Shown here piece after piece: positions 1,566 to 62,150 of a stretch of 64,000 bases of DNA; the stretch's first letter is position 1; the number at the start of each line of letters is the position of its first letter. Under the pieces are notes generated by a model, which saw only the letters and a program-made list of their open reading frames with translations, had not been told where the DNA came from and made no database searches. The stretch is taken from positions 62,001 to 126,000 of IMG/VR virus record IMGVR_UViG_3300043418_000072. One strand, given 5' to 3'. The translations under genes were made by a program, and so were the position numbers.

Positions 1566-2667
1566 AGAACTTTTTGATTGTGCGAACCACATGTTCGACT
1601 TCGCTATCAGTCATTTCGGGGTAGATAGGCAAGCTCATACATTCGCGTGTATATGCACTTGATTCTCTAAAGAATTCATTCATATAGTCGGTGTATTCGT
1701 AACCAACTGGCAATTCAAACAATGGCTTGTCGTAGTGTATCTTTGTTTCGATGCCTGCGTCACGCATATACTGCATCAATGCGTGTCGGTTACTTAGGCG
1801 AATAACAAACTTGTGCCATGCGTGTACAACATCGTCATTGGGCAGTAGCACATCTACGTAAGACACAAGGTTCTCAATATAGTACTCAGCAATGGCTGTT
1901 CTACGCTTTTGCCAATCATCAAAGTGCTTGAGCTTCACTAACATTTGAGCACAATCACTTTCACTCATTCTACTGTTAGTCCCGGGGATTTGATGCCCGC
2001 TTGTTTTACCATTGTCCCGTAAGTCTACTATGTTGCAGAAGAACTCGTAATCGTCTGTGAGAATCATTCCGCCACTGCCATAGTTGGGAAGATTTTTAGT
2101 AGGATCAAAACTCAGCACACCTGCAGTACCCAGCTTGCCACTGGGGATACCTTTGTAGCTAGCACCAAAGCTCTGTGCAGCATCCTCTAGGATAAACAAG
2201 TCTTGATTAAAGAACTCTGTCATGACTCTAAAGCGATCGTAGTCGATTGTATTGCCAAACAAGTTGGCGTACATAATGGCACCAACTCCTGCACCTTTGA
2301 GTGCATAGTCACTGCTTTCAAGATCGATCAGTGCTTTATAATCGGTGTCGCAAAATACAGGTTCGTGCCCACTTAGTAGCACACTGTTGATTGTGGCAGC
2401 AAAGCTGATAGTGGGTATCATTACTTTGTCTCCGGCTGCAACGCCTGCCATCAAGGAGAAGATAAGTCCCTGCGTACATGACCCAACTGCAACAGCATAG
2501 CGTCTTTGGCAACGTGCAGCAATGGCTTGTTCAAACGTGTATGTTTGATGTCCATTAAGTACCTGACCAGTCTGGTAGACTGCATCGCTTGCATTAAGCA
2601 ATTCTTCACGCAGACTGGCGTACTGACGGGGTAATCCGAAGAACGGTATTAGATTTGGGTTTTCCAA
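1558..2667 (-). CDS. DegT/DnrJ/EryC1/StrS PLP-dependent sugar aminotransferase
   Basis: EDAAQSFGA, SFDPTKNL (PLP lysine), GGMILTDD and SLPIYPEM motifs. Confidence 0.92.
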   Translation of the reverse strand: MENPNLIPFFGLPRQYASLREELLNASDAVYQTGQVLNGHQTYTFEQAIAARCQRRYAVAVGSCTQGLIFSLMAGVAAGDKVMIPTISFAATINSVLLSGHEPVFCDTDYKALIDLESSDYALKGAGVGAIMYANLFGNTIDYDRFRVMTEFFNQDLFILEDAAQSFGASYKGIPSGKLGTAGVLSFDPTKNLPNYGSGGMILTDDYEFFCNIVDLRDNGKTSGHQIPGTNSRMSESDCAQMLVKLKHFDDWQKRRTAIAEYYIENLVSYVDVLLPNDDVVHAWHKFVIRLSNRHALMQYMRDAGIETKIHYDKPLFELPVGYEYTDYMNEFFRESSAYTRECMSLPIYPEMTDSEVEHVVRTIKKFFS

Positions 2668-4525: not shown

Positions 4526-4994
4526 AAATTACGTAAGTGAAATTGTTTGCTGCGTCTGATGTAGCACGTACTGGGCTCCACCCTGTTAGCAGAGATTTTA
4601 AGTTTATCTTAGTATCTATTTTATATGAACCCTTGATGTGAGTCAAGTACATTCTGTCAAAGATACCATCGCATTGTTCCAATACGTTTGGCCCGCCTAC
4701 TACCCAAATGATTTTGTCTGGGTGACGTTTTTCTAATGCAAGGATTTCTTCTTTAAGATCGCCTTTGATCTGTGCTGCATGAAATACAGGCTTAGTGGTT
4801 GCAACATATACCGTACGACCGGTTAAGGGTTTAGGTAACTTAGGATCGTCCCATGAGGTTCGCCCCATTACAACTACATGACCATCTGTAAGTCGTTTAA
4901 AGTGTTTCATATCTTCGGAGTTGTGGGGCCATGGCAGTGTGCCATTAAACCCCATTCCGCCGTATTGGTCTACGGCAAAAAGGGCGTTTATCAT
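4485..4994 (-). CDS. folA: Dihydrofolate reductase
   Basis: LPWP..EDMKHFK, VVMGRTSW, PL.GR and VVGG motifs; adjacent to thyA. Confidence 0.93.
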   Translation of the reverse strand: MINALFAVDQYGGMGFNGTLPWPHNSEDMKHFKRLTDGHVVVMGRTSWDDPKLPKPLTGRTVYVATTKPVFHAAQIKGDLKEEILALEKRHPDKIIWVVGGPNVLEQCDGIFDRMYLTHIKGSYKIDTKINLKSLLTGWSPVRATSDAANNFTYVIYEHLFGRTTGSPE

Positions 4995-5335
4995 AAGTTC
5001 TTTAGTAGATTATCTGTTGCTGGTTGCACCGCAAGGCGCACTTGCTCGATGTTAATGTAAAAATCAACATCATCGATGATGTCGTCTAAGGTCTCCAATC
5101 GCTCTTCGAGGTGAATTCTAAGAGCGTCGGGATCGGCCCCTTCGGCAAGCATTTCCTGGATATCAATAACAACTTGTGTTCCATCGGTTAGGTTCACTAC
5201 TATTGACTCCAACATCTCAATGGGCACATCCTCTTTCTCAACGTCTTTGAGGATGGCCTCCCATTGTTTTTTGCTGCTTAGATTAAGCCGCTTGCTTTTT
5301 GGTCGCTTTGGCTTTTGTGGTTTTTCTTGTGCCAT
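4991..5335 (-). CDS. Hypothetical protein (acidic C-terminus)
   Basis: Tightly packed ORF within the operon. Confidence 0.6.
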   Translation of the reverse strand: MAQEKPQKPKRPKSKRLNLSSKKQWEAILKDVEKEDVPIEMLESIVVNLTDGTQVVIDIQEMLAEGADPDALRIHLEERLETLDDIIDDVDFYINIEQVRLAVQPATDNLLKNL

Positions 5336-12265: not shown

Positions 12266-13459
12266 TTAGTACCCTGCGTATTTTTGGCTGTCGGGCACTT
12301 GTGGCAAGCTCAGTTTACCAGCAAACTTAGCAGGATTGTAGTAATCCATTACCAGGATCGGGGTCAAGCAACCGTCGCTCCATGAACGTACCAAGCCGTT
12401 GTCGTCTTGGAACTTTTCCAAGCGTGACTTACAGTCCTTGTGAAAGGATTTGGGAGATCCATACACAGAGCGGAACAGATTGTACAAATCTTGCTCAACC
12501 GCAGGGGTCAATGTCGCTGGTGTCTTGGCAGTTCGAGAAGCGTGATGCAATCGACCAAATGCAAGAATAAAACCACCATCTACGCCCTTTTCAGCAGGGT
12601 AGTACTTGTTGTGCCACGCAAGTGCCCACTCCAGGTCCTGGATAGACTTTTTAAACAACTTCATGTCGGTACCATGTCCTGCAATGGTGTTTAAACCATG
12701 AATGTAAGTTACCATGCCTGGTGTTGCAAGTTGCCCTCGAGCATCACTAGCCTTTGCTGGGAACATGTTGTTCTTTTCCATTGCACACTGGATTGCTTCG
12801 CTTTGTACGTCTTCGTCAAAGTTGCTGGCATATAAACGTACACCGTTAACTCGACTACGATGCAAGTGATACGCATCAATGCCCTTGCGGCCACCACCGT
12901 TAATTTGGCGGAAACCATAGTTACCAACAGCTTCGCCCTGCAAGTCTGTGCCCGGTACTTCCATGTCTTCGTCGAACGCTTTTACTTGCACAAGGAAGTC
13001 GCCGTCGATCAAACCGGCAGTATACAAATGGTAGTACAAGCAGGAAGTTTGTTGACCTTCCCACACACTATAACGACCGTTTGCAAGTTTGGTTGCCATC
13101 ACAGGCATTGCAATACGTGGATCAAATCGTTCAAGCACGTTAGCCTGATGTTCCGCATCCTCGTCGCGCTGAATCTCGATATTGATGTCCAGGTCGCTAA
13201 TTTTAGCCCAGATCAGTTCACCGAAATGTTTGTGGGTGTATTTTTCTCCGCCAAGTCGAATGCGAAGATTGTTTAGTGCTTGCTGCACATGAGAATTGGT
13301 ATGAGCTCGTGCCCCACGTACTGTGAGCGGCTCGTAAATATTTGCTGCGCCTTGAGGCGTCATATTTACATTTTGTTGAATGACCATTGGTGCAAACGGA
13401 TTCGCTCCACGGTTGATTGTGCGTTGCACAGGAGTAGAGACTGGTGCGGCGGTTGCCAT
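12266..13459 (-). CDS. ParB/DGQHR-like domain protein (tentative)
   Basis: IQRD...FDP...YSVWEGQQT resembles the ParB-like (V/I)xDGQH motif. Confidence 0.45.
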   Translation of the reverse strand: MATAAPVSTPVQRTINRGANPFAPMVIQQNVNMTPQGAANIYEPLTVRGARAHTNSHVQQALNNLRIRLGGEKYTHKHFGELIWAKISDLDINIEIQRDEDAEHQANVLERFDPRIAMPVMATKLANGRYSVWEGQQTSCLYYHLYTAGLIDGDFLVQVKAFDEDMEVPGTDLQGEAVGNYGFRQINGGGRKGIDAYHLHRSRVNGVRLYASNFDEDVQSEAIQCAMEKNNMFPAKASDARGQLATPGMVTYIHGLNTIAGHGTDMKLFKKSIQDLEWALAWHNKYYPAEKGVDGGFILAFGRLHHASRTAKTPATLTPAVEQDLYNLFRSVYGSPKSFHKDCKSRLEKFQDDNGLVRSWSDGCLTPILVMDYYNPAKFAGKLSLPQVPDSQKYAGY

Positions 13460-39882: not shown

Positions 39883-42552
39883 TTATTCCCAACTAAACAA
39901 ACTATCAAACGTTGTTTTAATGTCAGTGCTCTCAGAGATCTTCCACTCCAATACTCCCAACAAGTTCTCAACCTTTTGGTCCACGATAGTGGTTTCCATT
40001 AAGTCTTGGTCAAACGGCAAATCCTTGAACCATTGCGGGATGTGTGCTTCGTCGGTTGGATAACCAACGCTGGTATAACCCAATGGATTATCCTTTAGCT
40101 TACATACGATAGTCTTCATACCGTCAACAATACCTGTTGAGTAGTTGTCACTGTGCATACGCTTTAGGCTGTTCCAGTTCATAGCGGCGCGAACGTGTCC
40201 GGGCATGTTGGCTTTACCTTGTGCAACTTCTGCCGCAGTGTACTTGGTTAAGTTGTTTACACGTTTGGGTGTGCCCTTTTCCCAAGCTGGCTTTGCAGCA
40301 AACTCTAGTTTGAAGTTACGCACCTTGTCAATTACAACTTGGCGTACATCGTCGCCTTCGCTAGTTAACACATCAAGCAAAATCTCACTCAGGAAGTCTT
40401 GTACAATCTTAGGTGTATCACTACGCTTCAAGTCAAGGCCCATGGCTTTAACTTTGCCTGGCTTACCATCTGTATCCAATCGCTTGTTTTCCAAATCGTA
40501 AATTAGCACTGCGTAACGTTTCTTCTTGATAAACAAACCTTTGTAAGCAACTAGTTCACGTCCACCTTTAATGATAGCACCCATTTCTCGCGGACAGTGA
40601 CATGCACGTTCCATGAATTCCGGAAAGCTATCGTTGACTCCGTCAGCAATGGTATCGTAGAGTTGAACGCAGATGTCTTTGTTCCACTCCATCGTACCTG
40701 CTTCTACTTCCGCTTTAATGGCAGGCCACGCACTAAAGTATACCGAGTCTGTGTCACCGTAGATAACCGAGTCACCAACGTGGTCATATTTGCCAGTAAT
40801 CGCTTCGTTGACTGTTGCGTCCATGTGCTTGGCGATGATGCGGCCAGTGAGCGTTGTGCTCTGACCAATGCGTTGATCGAAGAAGCGACAACCTGCATTG
40901 AGGATGGCGCCGTATAAGCTGTTGAGGTTAATTTTTTTAACGAGCTGTCGCTTGTCCCAGAACGCTGTGTCCTCAGGAGTTGTTGCGGTCTTCTTTTTGG
41001 CTTGCATTTCTTTTCGTTCGGCATACCATCTTTCTAGCAGTCCGGGAATAATACCCTTCATGTCATATTTAAAAATTGTACCATTGGCACTGATAGTCCA
41101 AGGCTGATTACCTTCAAAGATAATCTTCCACACATCGGCTGCACTGTGTACAGTTTCGCCGCCACCTTCCCAATCAATGGTGATTTCTGTACCGGGCTTG
41201 CCTTCCATTACCGCTTGATACTCTAGTGTACCAAACATGTTTTCCCAAGCATCTGCAAAACTAGACCCTGCGGCCATTTTGTCTGCAATATACTTGTCAG
41301 TCATTGTGGTTCGCAGTTGTCCGACGATTGTTTCTGGGCCCATGTTAAGGGCTCGAATAGCCGAGGGGTAGAGCGAGTTAATGTCAATCGCTCCGATGTA
41401 GTTGTGTACTCCCTTTTTGGGGTAAGCAACGTAGGCACCTGCCGCTTGTGTTTCACCTTGATCATCTCGACTCTTTCTATTAGGAACAATCATACCTCTT
41501 GCGTGAGCTTCGTTGATAATCGCCTGCTCCGTTACAGCTACCGCACCCATTGTGGTCTGTAACAACACGGTGTTGTCGTGTGCAAGTTCGTTAGCAAGAT
41601 CTAGGAAACGTAGTTTCTTGTCTAGCTTTGCTAACAACATGGTATCTTGTCGGTTATATTCAATAAACGTAGGAAAGTCTTTGTTGTACAATTGGTCCAA
41701 CGTGCCTTCGTAGGCTGTCTTACGCTCATCTAGTTCATATTCGCCAATGGCGTCCAAACTATAACTGTGTCGTTCTTCATATGTGTACTTGCGGTACAGT
41801 TGCATATAGTCCAAATGCACACGACCCAACAAGTCGAATGTCAATTGTTCTGCACCAAAACGTTCAAACATACGCTGCTTCGGCATTTGTCCCCACAAGC
41901 ATAATCGTCTAGTGTCGTCTTTACTCAACACCTTAGTAATACGCATTGTGGTATAGGGAATATCAAAGCCTTCACTGTTCCAACCACTTAGGATGTCTGC
42001 GTCTTCAATCAAGTCAAGGAACGTGTCTAGCATGTCCTTTTCTTTTTCAAACAGATAGCAGTTTTCAAAGCGATTACAAATCTCTTGTGCAGTTTCCCAG
42101 CTATAGGTCTTAGGTGGTACTACTAGAGTAACCATCTTGTCTAGCCAGTCTAGGTACACAGAGATAGCAGTAATTGGGTTAAAGGGATCTTCAGGTCGAC
42201 TGTAACCACGTACTGGATCAAAGTCGACCTCAATGTCGAAAAAGGCTGTTTGTAGCTTAGGTGAGCTAGCGCCTAAGTAGTTACTTTCAAGGCAACGAAA
42301 GATTGGGTTAATATCACTTTCCCAAAGTCTCTTGTCGCTGTTGATGCGTAGCTCTTTCTGGTACTCTTTGTTGTTACGAGTACTAAATCTAGACACAGGT
42401 GTGTCGTAGATGGTGCGGAACTTGCCGCGTGGATCGTCATAATAAAACATGTATTCGGCTGGGTATTCACGAAAAACACGTTCGCCGTTAACTCGTTCTA
42501 CTACATGGATCTTGTCTTTTGCTCTGTCAAAGATTGCGTCAACGTAACTCAT
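39883..42552 (-). CDS. Family B DNA polymerase (gp43-like)
   Basis: Exo I FDIEV, Exo II WNSEGFDIPY, DINSLYPS, K.NLNSLYG, YGDTDS and KKRY motifs. Confidence 0.97.
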   Translation of the reverse strand: MSYVDAIFDRAKDKIHVVERVNGERVFREYPAEYMFYYDDPRGKFRTIYDTPVSRFSTRNNKEYQKELRINSDKRLWESDINPIFRCLESNYLGASSPKLQTAFFDIEVDFDPVRGYSRPEDPFNPITAISVYLDWLDKMVTLVVPPKTYSWETAQEICNRFENCYLFEKEKDMLDTFLDLIEDADILSGWNSEGFDIPYTTMRITKVLSKDDTRRLCLWGQMPKQRMFERFGAEQLTFDLLGRVHLDYMQLYRKYTYEERHSYSLDAIGEYELDERKTAYEGTLDQLYNKDFPTFIEYNRQDTMLLAKLDKKLRFLDLANELAHDNTVLLQTTMGAVAVTEQAIINEAHARGMIVPNRKSRDDQGETQAAGAYVAYPKKGVHNYIGAIDINSLYPSAIRALNMGPETIVGQLRTTMTDKYIADKMAAGSSFADAWENMFGTLEYQAVMEGKPGTEITIDWEGGGETVHSAADVWKIIFEGNQPWTISANGTIFKYDMKGIIPGLLERWYAERKEMQAKKKTATTPEDTAFWDKRQLVKKINLNSLYGAILNAGCRFFDQRIGQSTTLTGRIIAKHMDATVNEAITGKYDHVGDSVIYGDTDSVYFSAWPAIKAEVEAGTMEWNKDICVQLYDTIADGVNDSFPEFMERACHCPREMGAIIKGGRELVAYKGLFIKKKRYAVLIYDLENKRLDTDGKPGKVKAMGLDLKRSDTPKIVQDFLSEILLDVLTSEGDDVRQVVIDKVRNFKLEFAAKPAWEKGTPKRVNNLTKYTAAEVAQGKANMPGHVRAAMNWNSLKRMHSDNYSTGIVDGMKTIVCKLKDNPLGYTSVGYPTDEAHIPQWFKDLPFDQDLMETTIVDQKVENLLGVLEWKISESTDIKTTFDSLFSWE

Positions 42553-42766: not shown

Positions 42767-43054
42767 TTACATTGTGACTAACCTAAACAATGCAACACTG
42801 TCAATACTTACCAATAACACATAGTTAGCTAACATTCCAAAGCTACCTCTAGACCACGCACTCCACCCAAAAATAGCACACTGACTAATAAACAGTGGGT
42901 ACAGTATAAGGAAGGGTGGGGTAGGAACAGTCAGCATCATAGTGACAGAACACCCGATACTAGCTATCCACGCCGCTACTTCTAAACAGAAACGGAAGGG
43001 CCAGGCCTTAAAGTCGGCCTTAATCCATTTCCAAATGTCAATAACAACGTTCAA
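42767..43054 (-). CDS. Small membrane protein (3 transmembrane segments)
   Basis: Three hydrophobic segments. Confidence 0.7.
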   Translation of the reverse strand: MNVVIDIWKWIKADFKAWPFRFCLEVAAWIASIGCSVTMMLTVPTPPFLILYPLFISQCAIFGWSAWSRGSFGMLANYVLLVSIDSVALFRLVTM

Positions 43055-43326
43055 AGGGTTTTGCCCACAGTTTCGAGGATTGTGTTAAGCTCGTCGTGAT
43101 CGCGATTGGTCTCACCTAACTTAGCCTTGTATGCAATGCGTACTGCTTTCTTAAGGATAGCTGGTTTGATTTCCAGTTCTTCTGCGATAGCTTTGATTGT
43201 GTCGTTAAGGCCTTCGTTCAAAGTCTCAACTTCATTCATGACTTGCATGCCTTCGTTAACCAATTGAAGCAATTTGATTTTTGCATCACCGTTGAAGCTG
43301 CGGTTGTATCCGTTGTCGTTATCCAT
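43051..43326 (-). CDS. DsbA/GapR-like small dsDNA-binding protein (tentative)
   Basis: L.EGL.DTIKAIAEELEIKP..LKKA.RIA helical pattern; AGGAG RBS before the ATG at 43326. Confidence 0.5.
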   Translation of the reverse strand: MDNDNGYNRSFNGDAKIKLLQLVNEGMQVMNEVETLNEGLNDTIKAIAEELEIKPAILKKAVRIAYKAKLGETNRDHDELNTILETVGKTL

Positions 43327-43348
43327 ATAATCTCCTGTTGAAAAACAT

Positions 43349-43377
43349 ATTGTACAGTTACTTATTTGCAAAAGCAA
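43349..43377 (-). promoter_or_regulatory. Sigma70-type promoter
   Basis: TTGCTT-17 nt-TACAAT with an extended TG. Confidence 0.6.
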
Positions 43378-43387
43378 CGGATATCGG

Positions 43388-43505
43388 AAAAAGTGCTCAC
43401 TTTAGCAAGAGCCTGGCGTAGCCGATTGCTGGGGCAGCAGCCGCCCCTGTGACGCCTGGAGCAGAGCTCCTAACCGTTGACATCAACGGACCTAAGGTAG
43501 GTTTG
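43388..43505 (-). ncRNA. Candidate structured non-coding RNA (multi-stem, two possible pseudoknots)
   Basis: GC-rich intergenic segment with stems CCGTTGA/TCAACGG, GGAGC/GCTCC, GGGGC/GCCCC and AGCAA/TTGCT, plus long-range GGCGT/ACGCC. Strand inferred from the operon. Confidence 0.5.
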
Positions 43506-43511
43506 GTTTCT

Positions 43512-44612
43512 TCACAAGCTCAATTCGTCATCTTGCTTGTGAAGGTGTGCTTTTATTAATTTATCAATATATCCAAGGTTGCGTAAAACTTTGTAGGCCA
43601 AGTTTTCTACACCAAACTCACCGTATTGGTCTAGTCCACTTCTGCGCATCTTGCGGATCTTATCTGTAATGCGTTGTATGTCTGCTGAATCATCTGCGGT
43701 AGCTAATGCGGTATCGATTTGTTTAATTAGGTCGTGTACTTTGTGGTTAACCGCAGAATCATCAATGCTTGGTGGTTCAAACTTGGGTTCGTTAATCCAA
43801 CGATCGTTCAGGATACTGTAGACACCTGCACTAACTGGTGGTTCTTCAGAATCCTCTACATATAGTTCTACATCGTATCCACGAATGGTTACATCGTGTG
43901 CGTCATTCCATATTTGTTTTTTAGCACGATAAAACGCCGCAGCAATATCGTCGCATTGTAGGTCAGAGTAGCGAGTGACAATATGAAGGTCAAAATCGCT
44001 GTATTTCGTGTAGTTATAGTTACACATACTACCGGTTAAGACGATATCTAGCACCTTAAAGTCAGGTATTTCCAAGTAGTCTACAAACACCTTGGCGATC
44101 TGCATTAGCTTTAATTTAACTTCTGGACGTAAGCGATCGTTTTTCCATGCAGCAGAATTTAGGGTGTCGTGGTAAGCAATGTTGTTTTGTACGTATTCAA
44201 AGTCTTCTTTGATAATAGCAGGCTCGTTAAAGAACTTAGGGTACTTCTTGCCAAACTCACGCAAAACAACCCCAGCCATTGCGTTTGCTTCATTTTCTTC
44301 TGGACTACCTGTTGCGCCTGCGCCGGGTGGTAAACGATCTTCTTCGCGCTGCCGCCAATGCACTAGCTCGTGTGCTAGTGTACGTAGAATATCAATCGGG
44401 TGACGGTGTTCGATTGCAATGTAAATGGTTTCCGTTGCATCGTTATATGCACCAAAGCTACCTTGTTCATCATTGCCCGGCATTACTAGTACCGGGACAA
44501 TTTTAGGTAGCTTTTCAATCTCAAGGATGCGAACAGCGATAGGCAAAAACTTTGCTATCGCATGTACGAATCCCGAAGTTGATTTATCTGTGCTTCTTGG
44601 CATCGTTGGCAA
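43512..44612 (-). CDS. HExxH metallopeptidase-like domain fused to a Pol-beta-type nucleotidyltransferase
   Basis: LAHELVH...ENEANA, then GS..NYNY...SDFDLH...DVELY. Confidence 0.7.
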   Translation of the reverse strand: MPTMPRSTDKSTSGFVHAIAKFLPIAVRILEIEKLPKIVPVLVMPGNDEQGSFGAYNDATETIYIAIEHRHPIDILRTLAHELVHWRQREEDRLPPGAGATGSPEENEANAMAGVVLREFGKKYPKFFNEPAIIKEDFEYVQNNIAYHDTLNSAAWKNDRLRPEVKLKLMQIAKVFVDYLEIPDFKVLDIVLTGSMCNYNYTKYSDFDLHIVTRYSDLQCDDIAAAFYRAKKQIWNDAHDVTIRGYDVELYVEDSEEPPVSAGVYSILNDRWINEPKFEPPSIDDSAVNHKVHDLIKQIDTALATADDSADIQRITDKIRKMRRSGLDQYGEFGVENLAYKVLRNLGYIDKLIKAHLHKQDDELSL

Positions 44613-61514: not shown

Positions 61515-62150
61515 TTATTCCGCTTTTGTATTATTTAGCCCGCTTGCTGTTCTAACTACAAGGTCTAATGGCTGATCCCCTACTGCGGAAAAATACTTAG
61601 CATTGGGATCTTGTGACAATATTTCATCTAGCTTAACTGGATCGACATGCACCGGAAACTCTAGCTGTTTAGCAATACTCTTAATATAATTTGCTTTATA
61701 CAAATACAATAACTCAGTGCTTAGGTATACTGGATTGTGTCCCATTAAATATGGAATAGCTTTTTCAAAGTGCGGTAAAGTAATCTGTCCGCGCAATCTA
61801 GTCTGCTGATGCTCTAAGATGTTTTTGTCTCTACCAATTATTGCAAATTTTAAGTTATACCCTATGTCTTTTGCTGCGTTAACAAAACCTTTATAATCCG
61901 GGATTGATACGCTTCCTTTATACATATAGGGGCAGCTTATGCTAGTAAACGCAAACTTATCAAACTGTATGTCTTTAAGTGAGAGAGGCCGACGCCAAGC
62001 TTCGGCAAATGGTTCTTGATCGTGTGGCGCCCAGTAATTATTTGTTAGATAGTCCCACCCAAACACATTTGCATTGGCTGCAAATATTTTTGAAAATAAA
62101 TGATTCCCGGACCCCTGGGGGCCGGTTATCACCAATAAGGTTTTTGACAT
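61515..62150 (-). CDS. P-loop/sulfotransferase-like protein
   Basis: ITGPQGSGNH and IIGRD motifs. Confidence 0.5.
   Translation of the reverse strand: MSKTLLVITGPQGSGNHLFSKIFAANANVFGWDYLTNNYWAPHDQEPFAEAWRRPLSLKDIQFDKFAFTSISCPYMYKGSVSIPDYKGFVNAAKDIGYNLKFAIIGRDKNILEHQQTRLRGQITLPHFEKAIPYLMGHNPVYLSTELLYLYKANYIKSIAKQLEFPVHVDPVKLDEILSQDPNAKYFSAVGDQPLDLVVRTASGLNNTKAE

Follow-up and report, generated by a model that had tools for sequence, protein, structure and literature searches.

Phage T4 encodes two small stable RNAs, species 1 and 2 (rnaC and rnaD), which are structured, about 120–140 nt in size and of unknown function, and which lie immediately after the last tRNA of its tRNA operon. They are still annotated only as small stable RNAs with no stated function, and very few conserved, pseudoknotted RNA families from phages have a known role. 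HDV-like "theta" ribozymes and hammerheads are compact RNAs which are reported to occupy a similar position in phage tRNA arrays (PMC10879173), while the T4 gene 32 pseudoknot and gene 43 hairpin are translational operators located in the 5'UTR, overlapping the ribosome-binding site of the gene they control. Outside of phages, bacterial 3'UTR-derived small RNAs sit directly after a stop codon at the end of a transcription unit, end in a canonical terminator hairpin and act through a single-stranded seed.

The element described here is a GC-rich spacer of about 110 nt in a jumbo phage (IMG/VR record IMGVR_UViG_3300043418_000072, 354,098 bp, rated complete) with T4-like replication genes. The window analyzed is a 64,000-nt stretch of this record (positions 62,001 to 126,000), and coordinates below refer to it unless stated otherwise. 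The spacer was found to be a conserved, pseudoknotted non-coding RNA on the minus strand, which matches none of 4227 Rfam families and recurs in at least about 190 distinct copies on uncultured phage contigs. The original prediction, of a compact intergenic RNA with about five stems and two possible pseudoknots, held as an observation, although its second crossing pairing is better placed one register over.

Structure and location of the element

All genes around the element run on the minus strand and, read on that strand, the features are as follows.

43512..44612 (-): upstream ORF (366 aa) with an N-terminal zincin-like HExxH domain and a C-terminal Pol-beta-type nucleotidyltransferase; its TGA stop is at 43514-43512
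43388..43503 (-): whole RNA element as inferred, with a core fold at 43502-43394 plus a short U-run at 43392-43388
43490..43502 (-): P1, short hairpin (ACC...GGU) closing the loop that holds the near-invariant ACCUUA / CCUUAGG motif
43474..43489 (-): P2, hairpin CCGUUGA / UCAACGG
43458..43470 (-): P3, variable, optional hairpin GGAGC-UCU-GCUCC
43452..43456 (-): PK1 5' strand, GGCGU (part of the conserved AGGCGUC), pairing with ACGCC at 43415-43419 inside the P5 loop
43431..43447 (-): P4, 5-bp hairpin (GGGGC/GCCCC) with a 7-nt loop, GGCUGCU (43442-43436)
43404..43430 (-): P5, two-part stem (AGCAA/UUGCU outer, GGC/GCU inner) capped by the loop UACGCCAG (43420-43413), which supplies the PK1 3' strand
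43394..43403 (-): 3' tail AAAGUGAGCA, with the invariant core AAGUGAGC; A43397-G43396-C43395 can pair with U43439-C43440-G43441 of the P4 loop (PK2)
43388..43393 (-): C followed by a run of five U
43349..43377 (-): promoter of the DsbA-like gene, with -35 TTGCTT (43377-43372), a 17-nt spacer and -10 TACAAT (43354-43349)
43051..43336 (-): Shine-Dalgarno (SD) sequence AGGAGA (43336-43331) and the gene of a DsbA-like dsDNA-binding protein (ATG 43326, 91 aa), followed by a 95-aa ORF and a family-B DNA polymerase (39883-42552)

The GC-rich stretch begins 9 nt after the TGA stop (the RNA itself starts 9–12 nt after it) and has a G+C content of 57.5% against about 40% in the flanks. A second local G+C peak (53–55%) lies at 44240-44420, inside the N-terminal zincin-coding part of the upstream ORF, near its overlap with the preceding ORF. 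The upstream ORF matches phrog_36119 (E = 5e-51), with a weak PF01909 hit, a minimal HExxH...ENEAN zincin domain and a GS-x10-DFD (GS...DxD) nucleotidyltransferase motif. In relatives these two domains are separate genes. The DsbA-like assignment rests on phrog_12534 and phrog_639 and on tblastn hits to phage proteins, one of which is annotated as T4-type DsbA, and the polymerase was called by phrog_262 and PF00136.

Every complementary segment originally listed was confirmed by direct reading, namely ACCT/AGGT, CCGTTGA/TCAACGG, GGAGC/GCTCC, GGGGC/GCCCC, AGCAA/TTGCT and the crossing pair GGCGT/ACGCC. However, folding energy alone would not single the region out, with an MFE of -45.3 kcal/mol and z = -1.78 on the minus strand (z = -0.93 on the plus strand). 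The case rests instead on relatives. A blastn search of the element against loci fetched through the flanking proteins gave copies of about 78% identity lying next to quite different coding sequence, and a motif taken from these (ACCTTAGG..C..GTTG..GGCGTC) matched at least 119 viral contigs. Twenty distinct sequences of the window's own class (class A) were aligned and scored against the proposed structure. In this alignment 92.9% of cells pair compared with 82.7% after shuffling, 16 of 34 pairs change on both sides, and the covariation score is 0.362 against 0.151, a score reached by 0 of 500 shuffles. Sliding the 3' partners by 1–3 columns drops pairing to 30–41%. With 33 distinct sequences aligned to a covariance model, an alignment which leans towards the model, 24 pairs show double changes.

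P3, the outer half of P4 and all eight pairs of P5 are proven by compensation. In P3 all four alignable pairs show double changes with 100% of cells paired, although the hairpin is absent or of different length in many relatives. The P4 stem pairs covary (C-G/U-A/G-C and A-U/G-C/C-G, 97.5% of cells paired) and its loop is invariant apart from three contigs. For P1, across 81 distinct 5' domains the outer pair is C-G in 50, U-A in 7 and A-U in 3, with the other two pairs being C-G or U.G. For P2, 97.8% of cells pair in 81 sequences; its 5' strand was fixed by the search pattern, but the 3' strand stays complementary, with one G.U and one double change. An alternative helix predicted by RNAalifold (CCUACC:GGUUAGG) was rejected, as relatives with CCCACC do not keep it.

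PK1 never varies in the 20 class-A sequences, so that this class says nothing either way. In more distant members the 5' strand reads GGUGU opposite the same ACGCC, giving six U.G cells, one double change and 96.3% of cells paired, which is what an RNA helix on this strand would allow. PK2 was originally written as TGCT/AGCA (UGCU with AGCA), which is probably one register off. Two related contigs (L171 and L471) carry the loop GGCCGCU together with the tail GUGGGC, a compensatory U>C / A>G change for G43441-C43440-U43439 pairing with A43397-G43396-C43395. A further contig (L479) changes loop position 5, the G which the original register would need, without any change in the tail. In the revised register 100% of cells pair but, with one independent compensatory event, PK2 should be regarded as likely and not proven. 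Both PK1 and PK2 stay compatible in all variants.

The original prediction did not state the strand. In the scored helices 28 cells are G.U on the minus-strand reading, which would be A.C mismatches on the other strand, while only 10 go the other way. The element also has the orientation of its neighboring genes and, in relatives, of adjacent tRNAs, which together place the RNA on the minus strand. Only ORFs of 27–36 aa overlap the element and the compensatory pattern argues for RNA.

The interpretation originally offered was partly supported. The element is an unannotated structured non-coding RNA, as had been inferred. It is not a tRNA or tmRNA, with ARAGORN finding nothing in the window and no tRNA or tmRNA hit in Rfam. 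The genome's 48 tRNAs, its tmRNA (tag ANDSQFLMVA) and a tRNA with anticodon CUA, an amber suppressor labeled "Pyl" by ARAGORN, lie elsewhere, all on one strand (174391-174465, 179583-179981 and 280156-302664 of the whole record, outside the window). The Rfam comparison that had been proposed as a check gave no hit at gathering thresholds (Rfam 15) in the whole window, and at E ≤ 10 only noise on the 261-nt region 43300-43560 (E > 3, about 10–15 bits). There was likewise no real match on the copy in Limnohabitans phage DC31. Rfam hits in 14 related loci are tRNAs, a group I intron, a permuted tmRNA and an int-alpA RNA, none of which lies on the element; related contigs carry a permuted (two-piece) tmRNA about 300 nt upstream of the element and another contig carries a group I intron and an int-alpA RNA (L168:936-1237 (-) and L145:602-906 (-), 2367-2432 (-)). 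The element is also not a simple terminator on the coding strand, as a scan found no intrinsic terminator on the minus strand in 43000-44000 and the U5 run is preceded by the 10-nt unpaired tail and not by a GC-rich stem. Relatives are U-rich here, with a median of 5–6 U in 12 nt.

The prediction that the element lies at the end of a transcription unit, just before a sigma70 promoter, was also supported. This promoter was missed by a threshold-based scan, but the same -35/-10/SD layout (TTGACA/TTGCTT/TTGCAA - N17 - TATAAT-like, then AGGAG) is conserved within the 55–74 nt between the tail and the ATG in all 24 relatives where the DsbA-like gene follows the RNA directly. The -35 often reads TTGCTTTT, which resembles a T4 MotA box as much as TTGACA. 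However, the "polyprotein operon" at whose end the element had been placed was not supported, as the upstream genes are ordinary separate ORFs (zincin + Pol-beta nucleotidyltransferase, a 389-aa ORF and an HD-domain protein). The suggestion of a small ribozyme or RNA-processing element remains hypothetical, with nothing here showing cleavage.

Distribution and genomic context

The class-A covariance model hits 43376-43510 on the minus strand (132 bits, E = 1.7e-32), the only hit in the window and in the whole 354-kb genome, and a model of the 5' domain scores 58.7 bits. A second scan of viral contigs, anchored on CCTTAGG, the P4 loop and the tail, gave at least 120 stretches and 116 distinct sequences. 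Together with the first scan about 190 distinct copies were obtained, 119 of the window's class and 71 of other classes, both scans being lower bounds. These fall into several structural classes which share the CCUUAGG motif and the P2 hairpin (CCGUUG...), and most have AGGCGUC pairing with the loop of a downstream hairpin, while their 3' domains differ. The GGCUGCU loop and AAGUGAGC tail are further features of the window's class, and all motifs of the proposed family (CCUUAGG-pseudoknot RNA) are present in the window. In a large sister type, the strand which forms local P1 in the window instead pairs long-range with the segment just before P4 (for example ACACC:GGUGU, AUACACUA:UAGUGUAU and ACCCU:AGGGU), with an observed mean helix of 4.38 bp against 3.95 ± 0.065 with permuted partners.

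Two complete relatives have one copy each, while one 97%-complete relative has none detectable. The only multi-copy case seen was a viral contig carrying two copies of the 5' domain about 500 nt apart (L148:3552-3609 and L148:4091-4135). A blastn search of the window element against 50,697 phage records found nothing and, of three further queries from other classes, only one short hit was on the element. This was the copy in DC31, the only cultured carrier found, where an unannotated copy of about 190 nt (PQ492658, about 12510-12705; L217:2496-2690) lies directly after tRNA-Tyr and before a DUF5681 / large-terminase gene pair. A motif scan of bacterial and archaeal genomes gave 120 hits, nearly all of which were GC-rich coding sequence on inspection, as expected by chance for 18 fixed bases in 596 Gb (estimated at about 1000). 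Two looked like possible real copies (L250 and L260), with L260 scoring only 21.8 bits, and this uninformative scan gives no evidence for host homologs. Literature searches by motif strings and for phage RNA classes found nothing matching, although a published catalog of more than 10,000 unnamed candidate structured RNAs from IMG/VR viral contigs may already contain the motif (PMC10690425). On this basis it is considered a new RNA family of unknown function.

The flanking genes are diverse and fall into many unrelated clusters. Those upstream include non-specific endonuclease, RegA, SNase-like nuclease, Dps-like protein, zincin, tRNAs and many unknowns, and those downstream include zincin, Hsp20, DsbA-like protein, small-terminase-like protein and many unknowns. 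A functional tie to the upstream nucleotidyltransferase was rejected, as it lies directly upstream in only 3 of 116 contexts; the zincin domain alone is the commonest neighbor of the RNA in other classes, but its position is not fixed. In the window's class the DsbA-like gene is within two genes downstream in 42 of 116 copies, so that a link to that gene is not excluded.

The 5' edge is tight against the end of the preceding unit, with an upstream long ORF stopping 2–14 nt before the motif in 65 of 107 copies. In five distinct loci, the cultured phage DC31 being one of them, the RNA starts 1–5 nt after a tRNA 3' end in the same orientation; in this genome it lies 175 kb from the tRNA cluster, inside the replication module. 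A promoter usually follows. Apart from the 24 DsbA-like cases, a T4-late-like TAAATA occurs within 40 nt after the tail in 30 of 116 copies and within about 50 nt upstream in 16 of 116, with none in a control window. In the other classes (e.g., L007:520-560, L151, L207, L191, and L199) the RNA is followed by ACUAAAUAC, like a T4 late promoter, and an AUG follows only 3–7 nt later with no SD. Non-homologous downstream proteins (zincin, a 94-aa protein and a protein with an HAD-like DxDDT motif) all begin MRAKEF here, which suggests a shared start cassette or leaderless late mRNAs. The RNA therefore marks the end of one transcription unit and the start of the next, and is not part of the promoter-proximal DsbA-like mRNA.

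Evidence for expression is weak and comes from assembled contigs of public runs. One metatranscriptome contains the whole region in a 4.6-kb contig, which is uninformative. Two other, independent RNA-type runs each contain an isolated 191-nt contig over the element (43313-43503 at word depth 2.6 and 43326-43516 at depth 6), while the last 200 nt of the upstream ORF are uncovered. These low-depth contigs could include DNA, and both run on through the promoter to the DsbA-like start codon, which fits read-through rather than a released 115-nt RNA. The DsbA-like gene is far deeper in the same runs (16–22), so the RNA is not obviously abundant. The contigs carry A43430>G (A-U becomes G.U) and CG>GA at 43424/43423 (creating GAGC:GCUC in P5), both of which preserve or improve pairing.

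Possible roles

The combination of single copy, strong sequence invariance in loops, two pseudoknots, independence from any one neighbor and end-of-unit position is best explained, at a tentative probability of about 0.4, by the single-copy gene of a compact structured small RNA of about 110–115 nt (minus strand, 43503 to about 43388) of a previously uncatalogued, phage-restricted family. The fold, the family and the position are established by the analysis, with PK2 as a possible contact between the P4 loop and the tail, whereas release, stability and action in trans are inferences. In this view the RNA, having no recognizable promoter of its own in this phage, would be transcribed as the last element of the upstream unit and its knotted, GC-rich fold would let it persist as a discrete 3'-terminal RNA, in a manner comparable to T4's stable RNAs and to bacterial 3'UTR-derived sRNAs. 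It would act by presenting its invariant unpaired nucleotides to a conserved partner, more likely a protein than an mRNA. The 10-nt complement of the tail occurs in the genome only at the element's own locus, with the 9-nt core occurring at two further sites. The nucleotidyltransferase is not proposed as the partner. Against this model, no canonical terminator defines the 3' end, and the contig evidence and the relative without a detectable copy must also be weighed.

None of the rival explanations is excluded on present evidence. The one which survives best, though still unlikely, is a purely cis-acting 3'-end element without trans function, in which the fold terminates or insulates transcription in front of the next promoter or blocks 3'-to-5' exonucleases to stabilize the upstream mRNA or tRNA transcript. 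Its location directly after stop codons or tRNA 3' ends and directly before promoters, the U-rich stretch after the tail and the constant orientation with its neighbors would fit. However, a generic terminator or stabilizer should recur and there is only one copy in this 350-kb genome, ten unpaired, sequence-invariant nucleotides lie between the last helix and the U-run, the invariant loops and two pseudoknots are more than a 3' block needs, and RNA-library contigs cross from the element into the DsbA-like gene start. If the RNA is only a 3'-end module, it still defines transcription-unit boundaries which annotation pipelines currently miss.

Somewhat less likely is a long-range 5' leader (a protein-binding operator, riboswitch or antitermination RNA) acting on read-through transcripts to control the DsbA-like / DNA polymerase operon here and the zincin gene in other classes. 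The frequent proximity of the DsbA-like gene, the contigs bridging the element and its start, and the riboswitch-like invariant junction bases are in its favor, as is the finding that in other classes the RNA ends 10–20 nt before the start codon of the zincin gene with no visible SD. However, in all 24 direct cases a complete promoter and SD lie between the RNA and the DsbA-like ATG, so the main mRNA lacks the element; downstream genes are otherwise unrelated (Hsp20, small-terminase-like, many unknowns), which makes a gene-specific leader unlikely. In the RegA-Hsp20 class a GC-rich hairpin with a U-run separates the RNA from the gene, and no known riboswitch model matches.

It is also possible, but unlikely, that the RNA is a new functional class rather than a passive structure, either a previously unknown self-cleaving ribozyme trimming tRNA and mRNA 3' ends in large phages, or a new ligand- or protein-sensing RNA whose invariant CCUUAGG, GGCUGCU and AAGUGAGC elements would form the active site. 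The weakest of the rivals, a self-cleaving ribozyme or other RNA-processing signal which would cut at or near its own 5' edge to release the upstream mRNA or tRNA and give the downstream RNA a new 5' end, could draw on the proximity of that edge to encoded tRNA CCA ends and stop codons, the compact double-pseudoknot fold with many invariant unpaired bases and the RNA-library contig ending at 43503, one nt before P1, but is doubtful as no Rfam ribozyme model matches even at E ≤ 10, the helix order does not fit the HDV-like topology, the second contig runs uncut to 43516 (contig ends being arbitrary at this depth) and the 3' domains differ completely between classes, which is unusual for a catalytic core.

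The family is abundant in freshwater and wastewater phage contigs, is single-copy, has clear covariation and several invariant loops, and has a cultured carrier. It is therefore a tractable entry point to a possibly new RNA function in large phages.

Comparison with known systems

The T4 stable RNAs sit in a place comparable to that of class-D relatives of this RNA, which lie directly after the last tRNA of a phage tRNA array, whereas the RNA in this window does not, and T4 rnaD shares a 12-nt string (GUCGCUACCGGU) with the P2 hairpin of some relatives. However, rnaD lacks the CCUUAGG hairpin and the pseudoknot domain, and the 5'-domain covariance model, run with filters off at E ≤ 10, gave no hit on rnaD and only a 3.9-bit noise match (E = 8) overlapping rnaC (positions 4909-5172 of the T4 region, L216). 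Homology is not claimed. HDV-like theta ribozymes and hammerheads are likewise compact, pseudoknotted RNAs placed a few nt after tRNA 3' ends or between cistrons. In the HDV-like nested double pseudoknot the first nucleotides form P1 with a strand 3' of P3, whereas here the 5' end forms a local 3–4 bp hairpin supported by covariation, or a helix closed before P4.

The T4 gene 32 and gene 43 operators are also structured RNAs in the replication-gene region, close to the DNA polymerase gene, one with a pseudoknot. Here, a promoter, the DsbA-like gene and another ORF lie between the RNA and the polymerase gene, and the neighbors vary across the family. Bacterial 3'UTR-derived small RNAs share the position directly after a stop codon at the end of a transcription unit and are proposed to persist as the stable 3' fragment, but in contrast to these the present RNA is almost fully folded, has no canonical terminator and shows no complementary target for its 10-nt tail elsewhere in its own genome.
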